Source: Bugula neritina (taxonomy: Eukaryota; Animalia; Bryozoa). Taken from it: 36,750 nt of DNA. The position numbers were made by a program, and so were the translations under genes. The stretch spans positions 1 through 36,750 of the forward strand of contig CAXIUT010000207.1 in NCBI GenBank assembly GCA_964035545.1. Reading direction: 5' to 3'. The notes below the pieces were generated by a model. It worked only from the letters and a program-made list of their open reading frames with translations. It was not told the DNA's origin and ran no database searches. Below, one piece after another: positions 23,006 through 36,750 of this stretch (positions are counted from its first letter, which is position 1; each line of letters begins with the position of its first letter).

Positions 23006-23079
23006 TGGTCATGGAGGGGATCGAACCCTCGACCGTTGCGTTATTAGCACAACGCTCTAACCAACTGAGCTACACGACC
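23006..23079 (-). tRNA. tRNA-Ile (AAT)
   Basis: GGTCGTGTAGCTCAGTTGGTTAGAGCGTTGTGCT-AAT-AACGCAACGGTCGAGGGTTCGATCCCCTCCATGACCA forms a cloverleaf with A and B boxes, followed by a T5 Pol III terminator. Confidence 0.96.
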
Positions 23080-27556: not shown

Positions 27557-29026
27557 TCACTGAAATAATTTCTTTTACCTTCCTGATTTCAACATTCTTC
27601 GATCGTAACTTTTTTATAACTGAAATAATTTCTACTACAATATTCTTCTTTTTCTTTACTTCTCATTACCTTTCTAAACGTTTTCATAATAATTTTTAAA
27701 TCCTGATACATCTCCTATACTTGTACTCTTGTTTGATAACTGTCTACTATCTGAATTACTAATTATCTTTGGTCTAAAAGTACACTATTTAACTTAGTCA
27801 TACTCTGTTTACTTCTGATATCTTTATGCTTTTTCCATTACTTTTCTTTTTATATTTTGTTGACTTTTTGCTCTTTTAGTTACTGTCATTGCTTTGCTGC
27901 TTTCATTGATTTGTGGCTTGTAACTTGGTGTTTTTCTTTAAGGAGTTTTGCAACGATGGACTTTGGTTGGAAAGTTGTTCAACTACTTTGAAATAACATT
28001 AATTGATGGAGTAAAACTATATTTAGAATATACTTGATTGTCTAACTCCTCCATTTTTTAATTTTTTTTGATAATAGGCACACTATGTAATCTATGTATT
28101 TTATCTACAAAAGTTTCATACTGTCTATCTTGAGTAATCAATTAAGAAAGTGCATTGATTCGAGGTTGATAAGTACACTAATCATCAGTAGATACCATAT
28201 GACTATTTTTACTTTGCGGATCAGATATGATGTAGTCATTGATGGTAGGAGTAAAAGTAAGTTATTTTTATTGATCTTTGATATATTTTTCTTTGATTTT
28301 ATCTAATTTGATTTATCTGTTTTTATAATCTTAAAATAATCGATCAACTATATTTACCATTCTGTTTTTATTTTGTTATTTTGATGTTTTGTTGATAGTA
28401 GGAGTAAAAGAGTATTATTTTTATTATCTTTATGCTAATAATTTTTTATGTTTTCTTTGTTCTTTTATTACCTTTTATAAACGAAGATACAAAGGTTACA
28501 AATCTATTTTTTATTTATTCAAAATAGATTATTTTTATGGATTATATGGTACTAACTGTTTACTCATAAATTATTAATTCTATTTCTAGATAAATTACTT
28601 TGATCTTTACAGCTGTTTTGATCTTCTTTTTTAAGCCTATTAATAAAGTCTATCAAATATTAGCGACATAGATTATCTGGATTGTATTCCATTGACAGTA
28701 ACAGGTTAAAAAGTAAGTTGTTTTAATTATTTTTATTCCATTTTATATCGTTTTTATGCTCTTTTTTGATTTCTATCTCGATTGTCTTTTGTCAAATTTT
28801 ACCACTGCTATTGTTTAGATCTATTTATGTTTTACCACTCATCAGGATATACAGCAAACGGAATGCCATGTACTTCAGGTTTGAACTTAAACCTTTTGGT
28901 TGTCTATTCTTTTATTTCCTATTGATGTCGACACCGACTAGTAACAATGCTATTTAATGACGATGTTTTGAATCGAGAAGTTATTGACTGATTGGTTGGA
29001 TAGTTGGTGAGATGGGATGTGAACAT
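27557..29026 (-). CDS. Hypothetical coiled-coil protein with (T/S)FxP and (D/E)RLY repeats, ~489 aa
   Basis: Motifs LTFEP, IFDRLYEEA, SFTPTINK and SYKPQINE. ATG 29026, TGA 27557; internal frame not fully verified. Confidence 0.55.
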
Positions 29027-29221
29027 GGACTATTTCAAAATTTAATAATCTATTTGGAATGGTTTAATATTATTCAAATAAACACAATATTCAAATAACC
29101 AACTAAAAACCCCTATTAGAGATATAAATGTCATATTTATGTTGATAGCAAAGAGTTACTAATAAAATGGGTAATATTGAAGAAATTTATGTTTATGATA
29201 AAGTTGCAGTTAAATTTAAAA

Positions 29222-30112
29222 ATGAGCAGGATATACCAAACCCGCGGATCGACTACTCGACACTCCAATCGCACCTTCGGCTAAGATCTCACCAACGTCA
29301 CTCATCTGCATCATAAGCAATCGACCTACACAAAAAAGAACTCATTTTGCTGCGACTGGCTCACTAAAATACCATAGTTCAGACCATACATATCATAAAT
29401 AACATAAATTACCTAGCAAGATAACTATATCAAATAAAACTATATGGCTTGGCAGTCAGATATTAATATTTGTATGCGGTAGATGTTAGTTAGTTGGATG
29501 GTGTAGATCTATCAGTTGCTTAATCTTAAAAAGGAAACTCTTTATCTAGCGGTATTTCTTTTAGATAAGTATAGTCATTGTAGATATGTAGCGAAAGATA
29601 GGTATCAGTTGTTGGGAATTAGTGTTCTTTTTGTAGCAGCTAAGTATTAATAAATTAAAACGCCCAGATTAAAACATTATGTAGAACAAGTCAAACTAAT
29701 TCATACCGGTTAACAAATATTGGAGATGGAAAGTCTTATACTCACTGCTTTGGCTTTTAATATCAAAATATGCACAAACTTACAAGCTATCACATAAAAT
29801 CTACAATATCTTTCTAGTGATTCTATCAGATCGAAGGCAGTGTTTTACATACTTGATCTAACTCTAATAAGTTATTAATTTTGTCAGATTAAGCCGATTG
29901 TGCTCAGCTGGGCTGTGATTATCTTTGCTGGTAAGAAGAATGGGAATAACTAGGTGAAATAAGAAGAGATAGTATAAAATTTTGGAGTGAATAAGATAGT
30001 ACTTAAGGAGACAATAAGTTTATTGGGTTAGTTATTTAATAAGAGAAGATGTCCATAATTTAAAGAAATCAATAAGAAACATGAAAAGTAACTGAAACAA
30101 CTATTTTACTGA
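29222..30112 (+). CDS. Mitotic (A/B-type) cyclin, 296 aa
   Basis: D-box-like RTFGEDLTN; cyclin box MREMLVSWMVEI, ETLYLAVFLLDKY, QLLGISVLFVAAKYEEI (EE = TAA TAA) and ILEMESLIL. Confidence 0.93.
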
Positions 30113-30175: not shown

Positions 30176-30257
30176 TGGGGTTGGGGTTGGGGTTGGGGTT
30201 GGGGTTGGGGTTGGGGTTGGGGTTGGGGTTGGGGTTGGGGTTGGGGTTGGGGTTGGG
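30176..30257 (+). repeat. (TTGGGG)n tract ending segment B
   Basis: About 82 nt of perfect repeats ending TTGGG; begins 63 nt after the cyclin stop. Confidence 0.97.
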
Positions 30258-31213
30258 AAGAAAATAAATGAAAATATATTTATTATTTTATGGTTTACAA
30301 ATAATAAATTAATTAAGAATAGTAGAATATGTCTAATTATCAAGTTTATTTTTAAATAGTTAAGTAGAAACTGCCATTGTTCTTTTGTTAGCTTTCTTTA
30401 TTTTACCAGCCGTAATCTCTATCTCTGTCATTGGCATTAGTTTATTCACTATCTTGTCTGAGAACTTTAGTTAGTTACAACATTGTAGTAATGATTATCT
30501 TTGAAATTACTGTAAAAATTATGTAATTGCAACATAAAACTTCTTCCATTATTCAGGATTTTCTTACTTGAGACGCAAATATTCAAGTATTAAGTTTATT
30601 TTACTGATTTAGCGATCTAGGGCACTAATTCTATAAAATGATGGTCGCTATTTCTCCTCTTACATTCTTTTTGCTTCCCTATATACCTCTATTTTTTATT
30701 TAAAAGAAAACTATATTCCCAAAATATGACTAATATTTATGCTAAAAAGCTAATTCAACAAATTATTTCCACAAGATACAAAAAACAATTTTTTCATGAT
30801 AGTATTTTTATTAAAATGACCTAGTCCATTTGAAAAGGGTAAACGTCTTGAAAATACAACCTTTTTTTCAACAATAGCAGAAAACTTTCCTCCATAAACC
30901 CAAAATTAATCACTCGACATTTCAGTTCGAGAGTAAATTTTAGAACCTCTAATAGTAATAGTCCCTAAATATAATGAGAGGTACCCAGTTGAACCTAAAG
31001 AATTGTTTAGATGAACTTTAAAGTTGATTCATTTTACTCTTAATTGTCCAAATACTAGGCTGGAATGACTTTGAACTCATAAACAACGATTTGTTCAACT
31101 CCGTGAAGAAAAGGAATGTATTTCTGAACTTACTTCGACTTTAGATTGAGATTGATGGTCTAAGAACATAGTTTGAGGCTTCTACCTTTTATTTCTGAGT
31201 TTTCACTTTTCAT
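30258..31213 (-). CDS. Divergent protein derived from the Piwi N-domain, 3'-truncated at the telomere junction; intron 30965-30984
   Basis: About 310 codons without TGA. LHGVEQIVVYEFKVIPA, RGSKIYSR and IMKKLFFVSCG align with Piwi LNGINKIVVFSVKVTPA, RGFNIFSR and IMSRLGYMEIG. Phase-1 20-nt intron at the homologous position. Confidence 0.7.
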
Positions 31214-31818
31214 ATTGAGTCAAATGAAATCCCAAGAAAGATGGGAGCATTTATAGTGCAGTCAAAGTGTTTGCTAACATCGGAATTTTGCTATATTTTA
31301 GCTATCTTTGCTATTTTTTATAAAATGAACACAAAAACAAGAGTTTCATCTAGGTTGGAACAACAAGCCAGATCCCTTAGATTTCCTCCAAATCAAGAGC
31401 TATCCTTGGGTAGAAACTACGGCTTGAGCAAAAGTTTGTCTGAGTCACAACTCAAGAGATAGGAGATCTTCATGGATAGCTGGATGACTAACTTCAAGTC
31501 AAGAGACTCTACTGACTCAAAAAGCCTCAATCTCTACTTCTCATACTTTTTTCAGTCAGAATCAAGAGTTTGAGAAGGAAATGTTAACTTTTTTTGGCAT
31601 TGTCTCCGAAATGATGCACCAACAATTGCATTGGTTCTTCTTCATTTTTCAAACTGAGAAATATGGACTCGAAAATCAATCTTCAGGTCAAGCAAAAGGT
31701 TTCCTCAACCAGTTAAAAGTCTTCTGATCTCTCACCTTTTCTTGTTAACTCTTTATTATCATTGATCTTTAACTATTATTATGAATATTGTAAAACTGAT
31801 AACTATGCTAACAATTTG
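31203..31818 (+). repeat. Subtelomeric ~615-bp block, copy 1
   Basis: Direct repeat of 36051-36664 with about 10 differences, counted by eye. Confidence 0.95.
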
Positions 31819-31898
31819 AAATAAATATGAAACTTATATGTTGTAAAATTCTAATAATTTATTATGAATTTATGTAATTAAAATACTATTTACTTTTA

Positions 31899-31979
31899 GG
31901 GGTTGGGGTTGGGGTTGGGGTTGGGGTTGGGGTTGGGGTTGGGGTTGGGGTTGGGGTTGGGGTTGGGGTTGGGGTTGGG
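31899..31979 (+). repeat. (GGGGTT)n tract ending segment C
   Basis: 81 nt of perfect repeats ending TTGGG. Confidence 0.97.
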
Positions 31980-32414
31980 ATTAGAATGCTGATTAAATAA
32001 TTCAAATATGAATATTTTTAAAAATTAAAAACTTTCTTGGAGATAATTGTTTTATTTTTATCAGTATTTTGTTTAAAAATAGACTTAAATCATAACAACA
32101 TATTCGAATGGATTATTTAATTTAAAAATAGTAATTAAAAAGAGTATCTTAAGCATTTCACAATTCTCATCTTAATAATTATTTCAGCTGTTTAAGAATC
32201 AAAAATCGAAATATTTTAGATTTTAATCAAATAGTTAAATAGATATTAGATATAAAATATTAACCGTATGCATTATATTTATATAAAATTCTATCTGATT
32301 CAAGTTTACTTTTCCTGTCAGAAATAAATAATTCAACAAATTACTAAAGGTTACTTCAAATTCTAACAAAATTCTTTAATTACAAGAAGCTTTTTCTATT
32401 GAAATCATGCTTGT

Positions 32415-33031
32415 CATCAAATATTCTTTAAACGATAAAAAGAAGTGGTTGGAAATTCTAATGTTTAGTACTTATTAGTTGTAGTATAAACAAACGAATT
32501 GATTCTATTTTTTACAACATTCCAGCAAAAAATTTGAAAAAAATTTATCTTTCTTCTGATTATATCAATAATTAAGGAATAAAAGCCCTAGTCAAATTCA
32601 AATTCTAAAATCTTCAAACTCTATTTCTTTCTAATTTATGCACTACAACAGACTGTTTGAAACTTCTAAAAAAATTACTACTCCTTTATTGTTTCTGGGA
32701 ATTATTTATCAAAAAAAATTTAGCTATCAGCAGTTATGTAAATAATTAACTTTTCTTTTAAAATTAAGACTAAATAACAACGATTCTTAATGTTTTAGTT
32801 ATTCATGTATAGACTTTCGTTGTTTCTGGATGTATTTACCACATTTTGCTAAAATAAAGACGAGCCTTCATTGTAAGCAAAATATAATTATTAGATCTGA
32901 GAGAGGTAAACCATTTTTGAGTGATCAGATGAACTCAAAAAATGTAGTAAAAATGTTGAATATTTATTAATATCCTAATATTCCTCGTCATAGTATACTT
33001 TTATGAAGAAATGATTTCTTTTATTTCTCAT
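32415..33031 (-). CDS. Possible hypothetical protein
   Basis: About 200-codon TGA-free minus frame from ATG 33031 (MRNKRNHFFIKVYYDEEYEDINKY...). No recognisable domain. Confidence 0.25.
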
Positions 33032-33698
33032 ATTACTAACTTCATTTAAATATATAGATAATTGTTAATTTATTTTATTTCAAGTAAATCTTTATTTATA
33101 AAATATAAATTTAATTTTAGATAATTAGATTTGTAGTATTTGGTCAAAATTAGTCTATATTTTTTGATATTTTGCTCAATAATATGCTGAATTTTGATTT
33201 TATCTTTGAATCAAAATTTAATATTCTAATTATAATTTGAGATTAAACATCTTATTGTGGATAAATAAATATTTATCTAAACCTCTATTTTTAATTTTTA
33301 ATTTTTGCTTATCAATATTATGTATATTTAAACTATTCTAATAATTCTCATAACTATCAAATGTAACTTATTTAATATAAATCGAACAAAAAATAAGTCT
33401 ATCAATGTGGAAATATTCGGGTTTATAGCAATAATTTTATTCATAAAAACACTAATTAATTAAGCATGTTCATATATCGTTAGTAGAAGTAAAAATTGTA
33501 AAAATAACTTTAATTTTTTAAAAAATGATCTTAAGTCTCTTTAAATTATCTTATTACCTATCATTTTTGAATCCTTCATCTTTTTTGTTTTATGTCCATA
33601 GATGTCTTATTCAAAATCAATAAAATAATAAAATAAATTTATTGATTAAGTTTGAATTTACAATAATAAAATAAGTTTAGAAATATGGGTTCAGATCA

Positions 33699-36061
33699 TC
33701 AGATGAAGTATGGCTTGTTTGCAAGGGATTCAGCGACTGGAACTCCACCTAGCACTTCAGCGTTGAATCTTGCACACTTTTTGGCATACTGTAGGATCGA
33801 AGGAATCTTGATAGAACCACTCCAGTTCACATAGTTGAAGCACTGACTGAAAATGAGCTCTTGTAGGTGTCCTTCTTCCAACTTGCTATCATTGTAGATC
33901 ACTTTGTAGTGGTTTGGTACCACTGATCCTTTGTTTGACTGTTGACTTACAATAAAGAAGTCGTAGTTTTTGCTGACCACACAACTATTGACAAGAGTTC
34001 CAGGTGGGACATTCTTGATGTTGCCTTCTTGACCAGAAAAGAATCTCTAGCTGTTTCTGAGGTTAACCATCACAACACATAGTTTCATGTTGACGTGGTA
34101 TGAGCTGTTGACTTTTCCAACTAAACTTTGCAAAAAAGTTATTGGAATTGATTGATTTGATCTCCAGGCGTAGCATTCATGAAAATAATCAACTCTGAAG
34201 GTGCATTTTTGTTTCTACCCACATATCCAGAGATGCATTTTTCACAAATATTCAACAAATCATTGAACTTGCTTTAGTTTCCTTGTGTCCTTTTAGTTGC
34301 AGAAACAAGTAAGGAGAAAGTGGAGTTGATAGTACCACAACCAGCCATCATGGAGACATTACCTTTTGAAGAAGTATCGATGCCAATCAACATAGTCCCT
34401 CCTAGCATATTCATCATATCTTCTTGATAAGAAGGGACCCAAAGTATGTTTCCACGCTTAGCTATCATCTGCAGAAGTATTTTTGTGTGAATACTCTGTC
34501 CTCCGTTCTTTTTTCTCAAAGTGTTATCTGTTACAAACTGAGTCAATACAGGCATCTCCTGTTTAGCATCCAAGGTAACCAACTTTAATTTGGGATAGTT
34601 GTTTTTCATGTTGGCAGGAATAGCTACGATTAGCATATTAGCTTCAGTATATTGTTTAAGAGCACGCTAGATACCACTAGTGAAGTCCCGATCAGAGAAA
34701 TTCTTCTGAAGTAAAAATTTGTTGAGAATTAGTTATGCCTTTAAATTGCGAGCAGTTTTTTCAATAGTGTCGACATCTGACTAATCTAGCTTGACTTTCC
34801 ATAGACAATTACACAGTTGATTGCATGTCGAGCTGAGAAAACTGGTTGGTTGAAGAGGGAAAAGAAAGCCTATTTACCCTTCTAAATAAAATTGTTTTTG
34901 CCCAATTCAAGTGAAGGGTTACTGATTTGTTTGGTCTGATATTTATTCATTTTAGCTTTCAAGTTGATTCCTATATCAGCTAAACTTTTCACTTAGTTGG
35001 CCTTATCAATTTCCTTCATAAATCCATCGATTTCTCTATATTTATCTTGAGGAGATAAAATAGTAGCCTGACTAATACTTTTTCTCCTATTCTCGTCGAA
35101 GTCATCAGGAATTCCAGTCATCAGGCATAGTTCAGGTACAAGCAGGCATTTGTCTTCAGTATCGTTTTGTTCTCTTCGTTTGATTTTGTTTTCAGCTCTT
35201 AAAAGTGGTTGGCCTTCATTTTTGATGGAAATTTGGTATTTCTTGAGGTAGTAGTCTTTCATGGATCCATGCTATTTCATATTCACATCATTCACACTCT
35301 GAAACTCAACATCCAACACCCGATAGAATCTGCACTTTCCATAGTTAGTCATTATTATCGTATTGATTAGAGCATTTTTGACTTAATTGCGTCTGTCCTA
35401 CTTTTCCTTGCTTTTATGTATAGCATATAAGTTGTTAATTTCGTCCAAAACAGTAGTACTTCTGACTATCTTTCTTGCAGAGTCCACTCTGAGAAACATA
35501 CTTTTTTCACACTCAGTAAAACTAGAAGAAAACCCCTTGAACATCTTTAGCTTGTCTATAGTTGACTGCTTATCAGCATGGAAGTATTTCCCAGTTTGAC
35601 CAATTTCCATATAACCAAGACGACTCATAATTCCACGAAGACTAGTATTCAAGAATTGTAAGAAAACAGTAGGCTTAGAACCAACATCAAATACCTTTCT
35701 CTGAGAAATAGTCAAAGTATAGCCAGAATTACACGCCTAGAATTGCTTCTACTTGCCTTCCTCACGGGAGAATATATTGAAACCTCGAAAGACAGGCTTG
35801 GCTAAATAGAGACAAAGGTACTTATTCTCTTCTCGACCTAGGGTCGAATCCTTCAAACAACTGAGATCGAAGCTTTAAGTTGTCTTTCTGGATGGCCGGA
35901 GTCACTTTCACACTGAACACTACGATCTTGTTTATTCCGTTGAGGGTGGCTTCGAAGTGGTTTGTTGTGATCTAGACTGACCTGAACTTGGAAGCATAAG
36001 GGCCTTTGGGGCGTGGGGGCAACGCCAGCAACTTACTAAATTTCGAGTCCTCACTTTACAT
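33699..36061 (-). CDS. Piwi-clade Argonaute (N-PAZ-MID-PIWI), ~780 aa; intron 35802-35821; three apparent 1-nt deletions
   Basis: ITTNHF, MTNYGKCRFYRV, DYYLKKYQISIKNEGQPLL, LVPELCLMTGIPD, KILLQMIAKRG..LW, MLIGID, NVPPGTLV, DFFIVSQ...GSVVPNHY and NWSGSIKIPSILQYA. Frameshifts near 35850, 34775 and 34130. Confidence 0.93.
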
Positions 36062-36664
36062 ATTGAGTCAAATGACATCCCAAGAAAGATGGGAGCATTT
36101 ATAGTGCAGTCAAAGTGTTTGCTAACATCGGAATTTTGCTATATTTTAGCTATCTTTGCTATTTTTTATAAAATGAACACAAAAACAAGAGTTTCATCTA
36201 GGTTGGAACAACAAGCCAGATCCCTTAGATTTCCTCCAAATCAAGAGCTATCCTTGGGTAGAAACTACGGCTTGAGCAAAAGTTTGTCTGAGTCACAACT
36301 CAAGAGATAGGAGATCTCATGGATAGCTGGATGACTAACTTCAAGTCAAGAGACTCTACTGACTCAAAAAGCCCCAATCTCTACTTCTCATACTTTTCTC
36401 GGTCAGAATCAGAGTTTGAGAAGGAAATGTTAACTTTTTTTGGCATTGTCTCCGAAATGATGCACCAACAATTGCATTGGTTCTTCTTCATTTTTCAAAC
36501 TGAGAAATATGGACTCGAAAATCAATCTTCAGGTCAAGCAAAAGGTTCCCTCAACCAGTTAAAAGTCTTCTGATCTCTCACCTTTTCTTGTTAACTCTTT
36601 ATTATCATTGATCTTTAACTATTATTATGAATATTGTAAAACTGATAACTATGATAACAATTTG
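36051..36664 (+). repeat. Subtelomeric ~615-bp block, copy 2, directly upstream of Piwi
   Basis: Direct repeat of 31203-31818. Telomere is added at ...AACAATTT|GGGG. Confidence 0.95.
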
Positions 36665-36750
36665 GGGTTGGGGTTGGGGTTGGGGTTGGGGTTGGGGTTG
36701 GGGTTGGGGTTGGGGTTGGGGTTGGGGTTGGGGTTGGGGTTGGGGTTGGG
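36662..36750 (+). repeat. Right terminal telomere (TTGGGG)n
   Basis: About 89 nt of perfect repeats to the window end, ending TTGGG. Confidence 0.98.

Follow-up and report, generated by a model that had tools for sequence, protein, structure and literature searches.

Concerted evolution of tandem duplicates through non-allelic gene conversion is a general mechanism of genome evolution. Ciliates carry many Piwi paralogues, including the Twi proteins of Tetrahymena and the Ptiwi proteins of Paramecium. In Oxytricha trifallax, somatic chromosomes have been described in which an identical segment is joined to segments that differ from each other, evolve faster and go back to short duplications (PMC4684698). 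In Blepharisma, alternative telomere addition sites are found along the macronuclear contigs (summarised in PMC13685798). The present study concerns a locus on contig CAXIUT010000207.1 (C216) of the 216-Mb Bugula neritina assembly GCA_964035545.1, where a 0.6-kb block occurs twice, upstream of a full Piwi gene and upstream of a strongly diverged Piwi-like frame. The window analysed is the whole contig, 36,750 nucleotides long.

Three GGGGTT tracts inside C216 (14037-14108 and the two internal tracts of Table 1) divide it into four units, U1-U4. The layout of the last two, both in the same orientation, is a Piwi-like frame with the block upstream of it (U3), an A+T-rich spacer, and the Piwi gene with the second block upstream of it (U4). 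On balance, we lean towards an old partial tandem duplicate of the Piwi gene and its upstream block, in which the block has been homogenised by gene conversion. A first-pass annotation of the sequence had listed this among four options, and it is adopted here as the best reading. The phenomenon is real but probably ordinary.

Host of the contig and genetic code

The Argonaute genes on the large contigs of the assembly are ordinary animal ones, with long GT-AG introns. C216 has CCCCAA repeats at its start, GGGGTT repeats at its end, introns of about 20 bases and a G+C content of about 30%. It is a macronuclear chromosome of a ciliate that was carried along into the assembly of an animal genome, and most other small contigs of the assembly are apparently ciliate DNA as well. 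TAA and TAG codons of the Piwi gene stand opposite glutamate in the relatives P0004, P0005 and P0006 at six of ten sites, aligned by eye; the code is therefore of the peritrich type, with TAA and TAG read as glutamate (TAR = Glu) and TGA as the stop.

A near-identical Piwi locus is found in the public sequencing runs X1-X10, which bear three organism labels and come from three studies, and at least two haplotypes, about 0.4% apart, are present among them. The ciliate recurs in the samples behind these runs, as an associate or a contaminant. Public k-mer contigs (Logan, k=31) of four runs from three studies were mapped on positions 30220-36219 of the window.

Two copies of the upstream block

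The first-pass annotation had reported a pair of blocks, about 98% identical, upstream of both frames, and the repeat search and blastn bear it out. The alignment of copy 1 with copy 2 gave 98.1% identity over 627 bases, and the repeat search returned three consecutive pairs: 31197-31469 with 36045-36317 (99%), 31470-31564 with 36317-36411 (97%) and 31565-31818 with 36411-36664 (99%). The copies are 4.85 kb apart. A search of the whole assembly with the block, proposed in that annotation as a way of counting the coding regions attached to it, found two places and none elsewhere, both in C216, in the same orientation, and each with its own coding body.

The copies differ by seven substitutions (copy 1/copy 2: 31210 T/A, 31228 A/C, 31527 T/C, 31551 T/C, 31554 A/G, 31702 T/C, 31808 C/A) and by two one-letter gaps, at 31469 and 31564. 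Both gaps are assembly errors in copy 2, because the Piwi-linked contig of run X2 (record 10) and a contig of run X1 (record 3) are gap-free relative to copy 1. Since the gaps are errors, and some of the substitutions perhaps errors too, the true identity of the copies is put at 98.9-100%. The substitutions at 31551 and 31554 look real: X1 record 3 has the copy 1 letters at both positions, and the three differences of X2 record 10 from copy 1 are taken to include the copy 2 letters there. Others of the seven may be assembly errors. The copy 1 letters 31527 T, 31702 T and 31808 C occur in no public run, although contigs of this kind drop minor variants.

Indel errors of 1-3 letters occur about every 500 bases of the window, at 32667, 32711, 33408, 33450, 34122, 34773, 35849, 36317 and 36411. 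An extra letter after 32667, 33408, 34122, 34773 and 35849, and the letters ACT after 33450, are present in every covering run (three to four of the four). Three of the errors break the Piwi frame and mimic extra introns.

The switch near the start codons

The switch near the start codon, with near-identical DNA on one side and strongly divergent coding DNA on the other, had been pointed out in the first-pass annotation and was recovered by the alignment. Block identity stops within about 30 bases of both start codons. The first 23 coding bases of U3 and U4 are about 74% alike, the colinear coding block is 46% identical, and to the left of 31197 the copies are unalignable. The last 32 bases of the block form a zone of 94% identity, and the switch is sharp near 31228/31229. 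The U3-specific differences inside the block at 31210 and 31228 both fall in these 32 bases, which has a probability of about 0.003 if differences are evenly spread; at both positions U4 agrees with related ciliates and U3 is derived. This pattern suggests layered conversion-tract edges at the start-codon end of the block.

The U3-to-block join is contained, without a single difference, in X1 record 2 (30524-31258) and X3 record 16 (31106-31256), and the Piwi-to-block join is carried by X2 record 10. The X1 contigs of U3 and U4 both end 30 bases past 31228/36076, which is how a k=31 graph behaves once the final base that tells the two apart has been passed. With independent contigs from two studies backing it, the join near 31203, for which a chimera had been considered beforehand, is not an assembly chimera of the window.

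Two further joints were seen in the mapped contigs, from 30297 to 35031 and from 33121 to 30295. They are taken as short low-complexity matches and were dismissed because they add almost no depth.

It is hardly credible that the whole arrangement is an assembly artefact or consists of very divergent alleles wrongly placed in tandem. The indel error rate of the window, the suspect telomere tracts and the agreement of U3 with the X1 type and of U4 with the X2 type are what would be expected of it. However, U3 is contiguous with the block in the X1 and X3 contigs just named, as is Piwi in X2 record 10, and the tandem order is supported by X2 record 13. Moreover, alleles would share both flanks, whereas U3 and U4 share one, and hyper-divergent alleles at one locus, another of the four options, poorly fit two copies that apparently lie in cis.

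The Piwi gene and the diverged Piwi-like frame

Copy 2 of the block leads into a full Piwi gene, as had been claimed. With N placed at the three read-supported missing letters, it is one frame of 781 codons. The Pfam search detected PAZ (PF02170, E 6.2e-10, above the curated cut-off) and Piwi (PF02171, E 2.1e-9 and 1.4e-23 on two pieces, matched in the whole-assembly scan too), the two domains by which Argonaute/Piwi proteins are recognised. In comparison with six full-length relatives, the catalytic triad reads D-A-H, with D in GIDTSS, alanine (FMNATPGD) where the RDG aspartate would stand, and H in PNHY. In the Piwi domain (window 34180-34200 and 34330-34350), the second aspartate is replaced by alanine or another residue in U4, P0001, P0004, P0006 and P0007, and U4 and its closest relatives have FMNA.P.DQ in place of YRDG. 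U4 is thus without the catalytic Asp-Asp-His of slicing-competent members, which bears on slicing and not on family membership; U4 and these relatives probably form a subfamily of slicer-deficient Piwi proteins.

The Piwi ancestry of the beginning of U3, proposed in the first-pass annotation, is supported. In blastp, U3 residues 36-114 and Piwi residues 40-118 align with 28% identity over 79 residues (E 9e-7), and the Smith-Waterman score of U3 against U4 is 90, versus 28.5 +/- 4.6 for shuffles (z=13.4). The gap-free stretch noted earlier does exist, at 79 residues and not 22. Colinearity with the Piwi N domain, described there as clear, applies to the first ~115 of 313 residues, and the remainder is unrecognisable: beyond residue 115, Smith-Waterman gave no similarity to Piwi above shuffles. 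Profile similarity, the test suggested for this frame, is likewise divided: the match to U4 is significant, but a profile of distant Piwis built without U4 does not separate U3 from shuffles, though the same stretch is aligned. The phase-1 intron is as had been described, in the column and phase of the Piwi intron.

The stop-free frame, previously estimated at about 310 codons, has 313 codons without TGA up to the tract, 21 of them TAA or TAG. Over the 236 codons of exon 2 there is no TGA, against 3-6 in each of the other five frames (shuffle P=0.008). Over the first ~150 codons the codon usage resembles that of genes, after which the signal fades, and the last ~105 bases of exon 2 have 15% G+C, like a 3' tail. 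No PAZ, MID or Piwi domain of U3 was found by Pfam on the stop-free pieces, by pairwise similarity or in the DNA left of the tract, and no relatives were found in a large protein collection (by shared words and with a 51-residue piece) or at related loci. In run X2, U3 is seen solely as a piece with 3 differences in 82 bases (>3%). Judging by its sequence, U3 is a Piwi-derived remnant, a derivative rather than a member of the Argonaute/Piwi family.

The continuation of the U3 frame across the tract into the C-terminal half of Piwi was considered and rejected: no Piwi-like sequence lies left of the tract, and other genes are located there.

We infer the functional state of U3 from these features. 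It was thought that U3 might be a co-regulated decoy or antagonist of Piwi. In this case it would be a working short Piwi-N-domain protein, for instance a decoy or regulator, expressed from the control region of the Piwi gene, and co-regulation would favour homogenisation of the block; such a role is compatible with the other readings, and we regard it as quite unlikely. The uninterrupted frame of exon 2, the gene-like codon usage of the first ~150 codons and the intact intron agree with a working protein, but the coding signal is gone after codon 150, no stop codon precedes the tract, neither a Pfam match nor a relative was found in the searches listed above, and X2 seems to carry solely the version more than 3% different.

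Conservation and nature of the block

Orthologous Piwi proteins of related ciliates are 75-83% identical to that of U4. At loci L057, L052-L056 and L051, an orthologous block is located directly upstream of the orthologous Piwi, in one alignment. The block shows 72-74% identity to related ciliates (L057, L052-L054), and the Piwi-containing alignments 75-78%. The within-genome identity of the block is therefore far younger than the species split, since the orthologous blocks are just 72-74% identical. Paralogous blocks at >=98.9%, orthologous blocks at 72-74% and flanking coding DNA at 46% present the combination by which gene conversion is recognised. The divergence of the U3 and Piwi coding sequences (46% for DNA, 28% for protein) is far older than the identity of the blocks.

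Conservation within the block is concentrated in islands at 31250-31340, 31370-31400 and 31580-31610 (77-93%). The first of them corresponds to 36098-36188, in the interval from 40 to 130 bases ahead of the Piwi start codon, and its identity to related ciliates is 83-93%. This 90-base stretch is better kept than the Piwi coding sequence and is a candidate promoter, leader or small-RNA element. A more distant relative (L049/L050, 59% protein identity) has other DNA upstream of Piwi and no block.

The core of the block has a G+C content of 36-39%, like coding DNA, compared with about 20% in the spacer and 11% in the extension, and codon scores slightly favour its + strand. Protein coding by the block was not adopted. 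The 83-codon frame that starts at 31325 lacks an ATG, and relatives have an upstream TGA; a second + strand frame was set aside as its ATG is lost in L057. The block frames gave no Pfam match, the 79-residue frame gave no candidates in the protein search, Rfam detected nothing in the block and window except one tRNA elsewhere in the window, and two exact scans found no block words in metagenome contigs. The description of the block as non-coding in the first-pass annotation is unproven in either direction. As its conservation between species roughly equals that of the Piwi coding sequence, the block is taken as conserved functional DNA, perhaps a leader, promoter or RNA.

Telomere tracts and the linkage of the two units

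Of the internal tracts across the assembly that end in TTGGG and are followed by unique sequence, 170 have one polarity and 24 the opposite one. Random end-to-end ligation was rejected as the origin of the tracts, there being 0 junctions of G4T2 with C4A2 versus 194 tract-to-unique junctions.

X2 record 13 matches 31757-31887 and 31991-32210, and the two flanks are separated by 103 letters in the contig and by 103 letters in the window, where the tract and 25 further bases fill the interval. Since a k=31 contig cannot pass a perfect 78-base repeat of six letters, X2 probably has ordinary sequence at the position of the tract. The tract of the window may overlie ordinary sequence, as a trace of an alternative end. 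With tracts lying over ordinary sequence, the two units would therefore be tandem neighbours.

X1 and X5 contigs carry T at 31820, and X5 enters other sequence after 31832, which is a loose end. The first ~14 bases of the extension are seemingly common to the sequence that follows another block copy in the public runs. Because contigs of X1, X2 and X5 continue past 31818, there is a second edge of the block that is internal, and the block does not lie at an end in every case. The block had been called a chromosome-end cassette; with contigs running past it, it is probably not at a true chromosome end.

U3 and U4 could instead be separate small macronuclear chromosomes, with the end of one copied onto the other, outward from a crossover at the start-codon region, through break-induced replication or through somatic recombination in the polyploid macronucleus. 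This is improbable. Telomere repeats follow both blocks in the window, depth differs about threefold in X1, and the identity reaches the tract in copy 2, all of which would suit separate molecules. Against this, the X1, X2 and X5 contigs go past 31818, and those of X5 enter different DNA after 31832; the tracts probably lie over ordinary sequence; and the same join in different studies points to a heritable or at least long-lived structure.

Unusual arrangements were seen in other ciliate contigs. In C11 (L032 5310-7553), a 29-base tandem array directly follows an internal tract. C14 (L034 2444-9446) has a 3.5-kb tandem duplication at 96% identity. In C15 (L037 4309-9434), a tract is followed by 200 N and then by a 97% copy of the 2.4 kb preceding the tract, an arrangement that resembles two versions joined in scaffolding.

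Origin of the arrangement

The arrangement of block and Piwi is ancestral and the U3 copy is derived. If the two units arose by tandem duplication with later conversion, an old event would have copied the block together with no less than the 5' part of the Piwi gene. The U3 coding copy would then have diverged almost to saturation, with Piwi sequence recognisable in its first ~115 residues, and non-allelic gene conversion would continue to homogenise the two blocks. Such a process between old tandem duplicates yields the combination seen here, in which the blocks became identical recently, the coding DNA attached to them diverged long ago, block and Piwi were linked ancestrally, and the copies have one orientation and lie 4.85 kb apart. 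One tract edge would be in the start-codon region that is kept in all copies and species, and the other about 14 bases past 31818.

Several points weigh against this scheme, in which conversion as a process is what we infer. The apparent collapse of the two copies in X1 is no proof of their identity, as Logan contigs drop rare variants. The cis linkage of U3 and U4 across the tract is deduced from a k-mer contig, X2 record 13. The depth in X1 is 4.9 for U3 versus 14.8 for U4, which may reflect a haplotype without a window-like U3 or separate molecules. The left end of U4 in X1 splits into a window-like type of depth 3.4 and another type of depth 9.4, and the threefold lower depth of U3 fits a haplotype effect.

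A further point is alternative DNA splicing, the developmental assembly listed among the four options, in which one germline block would be joined to both the Piwi and the U3 bodies during macronuclear development. Such an origin matches the Oxytricha pattern, where short duplications lead to faster-evolving alternative segments (PMC4684698), and it agrees with the sharp switch near 31228/31229 and with most block k-mers being common to both copies at summed depth in X1. We nevertheless consider it unlikely: both copies are in one contig, an X2 contig links the copy end to the left end of U4, public runs support the copy-specific substitutions at 31551 and 31554, and a 32-base zone of 94% identity is present instead of a clean pointer. 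To our knowledge, spirotrichs and Chilodonella reuse germline segments, but no such reuse is known from ciliates with the TAR = Glu code. That one germline block puts a slicer-deficient Piwi and a Piwi-N-domain-only protein, a possible antagonist, under one control region is very unlikely; it would extend alternative DNA splicing beyond its known lineages. Explanations other than those set out here are rather unlikely, too.

Other features of the window

The coordinates of the locus and of other features are collected in Table 1. A long frame on the minus strand at 27560-29341 encodes a protein with a repeated F-T-P-x-I-N motif. The spacer downstream of Piwi matches other, deeper X1 contigs at about 32956-33523 and may hold a dispersed repeat. 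Exact-product look-ups of the window proteins found none on record.

Table 1. Features of contig C216 at the Piwi locus and elsewhere (positions of the window; a dot marks features without strand)
Feature	Position	Strand	Remarks
Upstream block, copy 1	31197-31818	.	core 31325-31740; repeat search, assembly search, alignment
Upstream block, copy 2	36045-36664	.	two one-letter deletion errors in the window
U3 exon 1	30985-31213	-	ATG 31213-31211; Piwi-like N terminus
U3 intron	30965-30984	-	20 bases, GTACCT...TTTAG, phase 1; alignment column of the Piwi intron
U3 exon 2	30255-30964	-	236 codons, no TGA; no stop codon before the tract
Piwi exon 1 (U4)	35822-36061	-	ATG 36061-36059; window one letter short after 35849
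Piwi intron (U4)	35802-35821	-	20 bases, phase 1; exon split same in orthologues
Piwi exon 2 (U4)	33699-35801	-	stop TGA 33699-33701; window one letter short after 34122 and 34773
A+T-rich spacer, 1.7 kb, downstream of Piwi	31977-33698	.	20.5% G+C, no credible reading frame
A+T-rich extension, 80 bases	31819-31898	.	after copy 1 only
(GGGGTT)13 tract between U2 and U3	30177-30254	.	ends TTGGG like 170 internal tracts
(GGGGTT)13 tract between U3 and U4	31899-31976	.	
Terminal GGGGTT tract	36664-36750	.	contig end
tRNA-Ile (anticodon AAT)	23006-23079	-	Rfam and ARAGORN; sole RNA gene found in the window

Comparison with known systems

If duplication with homogenisation of the block is the true history, the locus is a clean small case in which concerted evolution affects a control region and the attached coding copy decays. 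If the block is a shared germline segment, or if U3 is an expressed Piwi-N-domain protein, the locus bears on the diversification of the small-RNA machinery of ciliates. In its own right, the 90-base stretch immediately ahead of the Piwi start is a candidate for a regulatory element, and chromosome ends in this assembly should not be taken at face value.

As in Blepharisma, telomere-bearing ends are located at many internal positions of longer assembled chromosomes, but here they are full-length tracts inside contig sequence, nearly always of one polarity. With Oxytricha trifallax the locus has in common a segment, here identical or nearly so, joined to different, faster-evolving segments. Unlike in that species, the two physical copies seem to be in cis, the common part is outside the Piwi frame, and the ciliate has C4A2 telomeres and the TAR = Glu code. 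U4 resembles the Twi and Ptiwi proteins in being a PAZ and Piwi protein of standard length with close relatives in other ciliate data sets; it differs from them by its D-A-H triad, and U3 by having none of the PAZ, MID and Piwi domains. Concerted evolution of tandem duplicates is comparable in that two copies seem to lie in cis a few kilobases apart, paralogue identity far exceeds orthologue identity, and sharp edges separate the block from old, diverged flanks. In contrast to the usual course of that process, which is deduced here from its traces, homogenisation would have affected the upstream block and not the coding sequence, and the coding partner would have decayed to an N-terminal remnant of Piwi.

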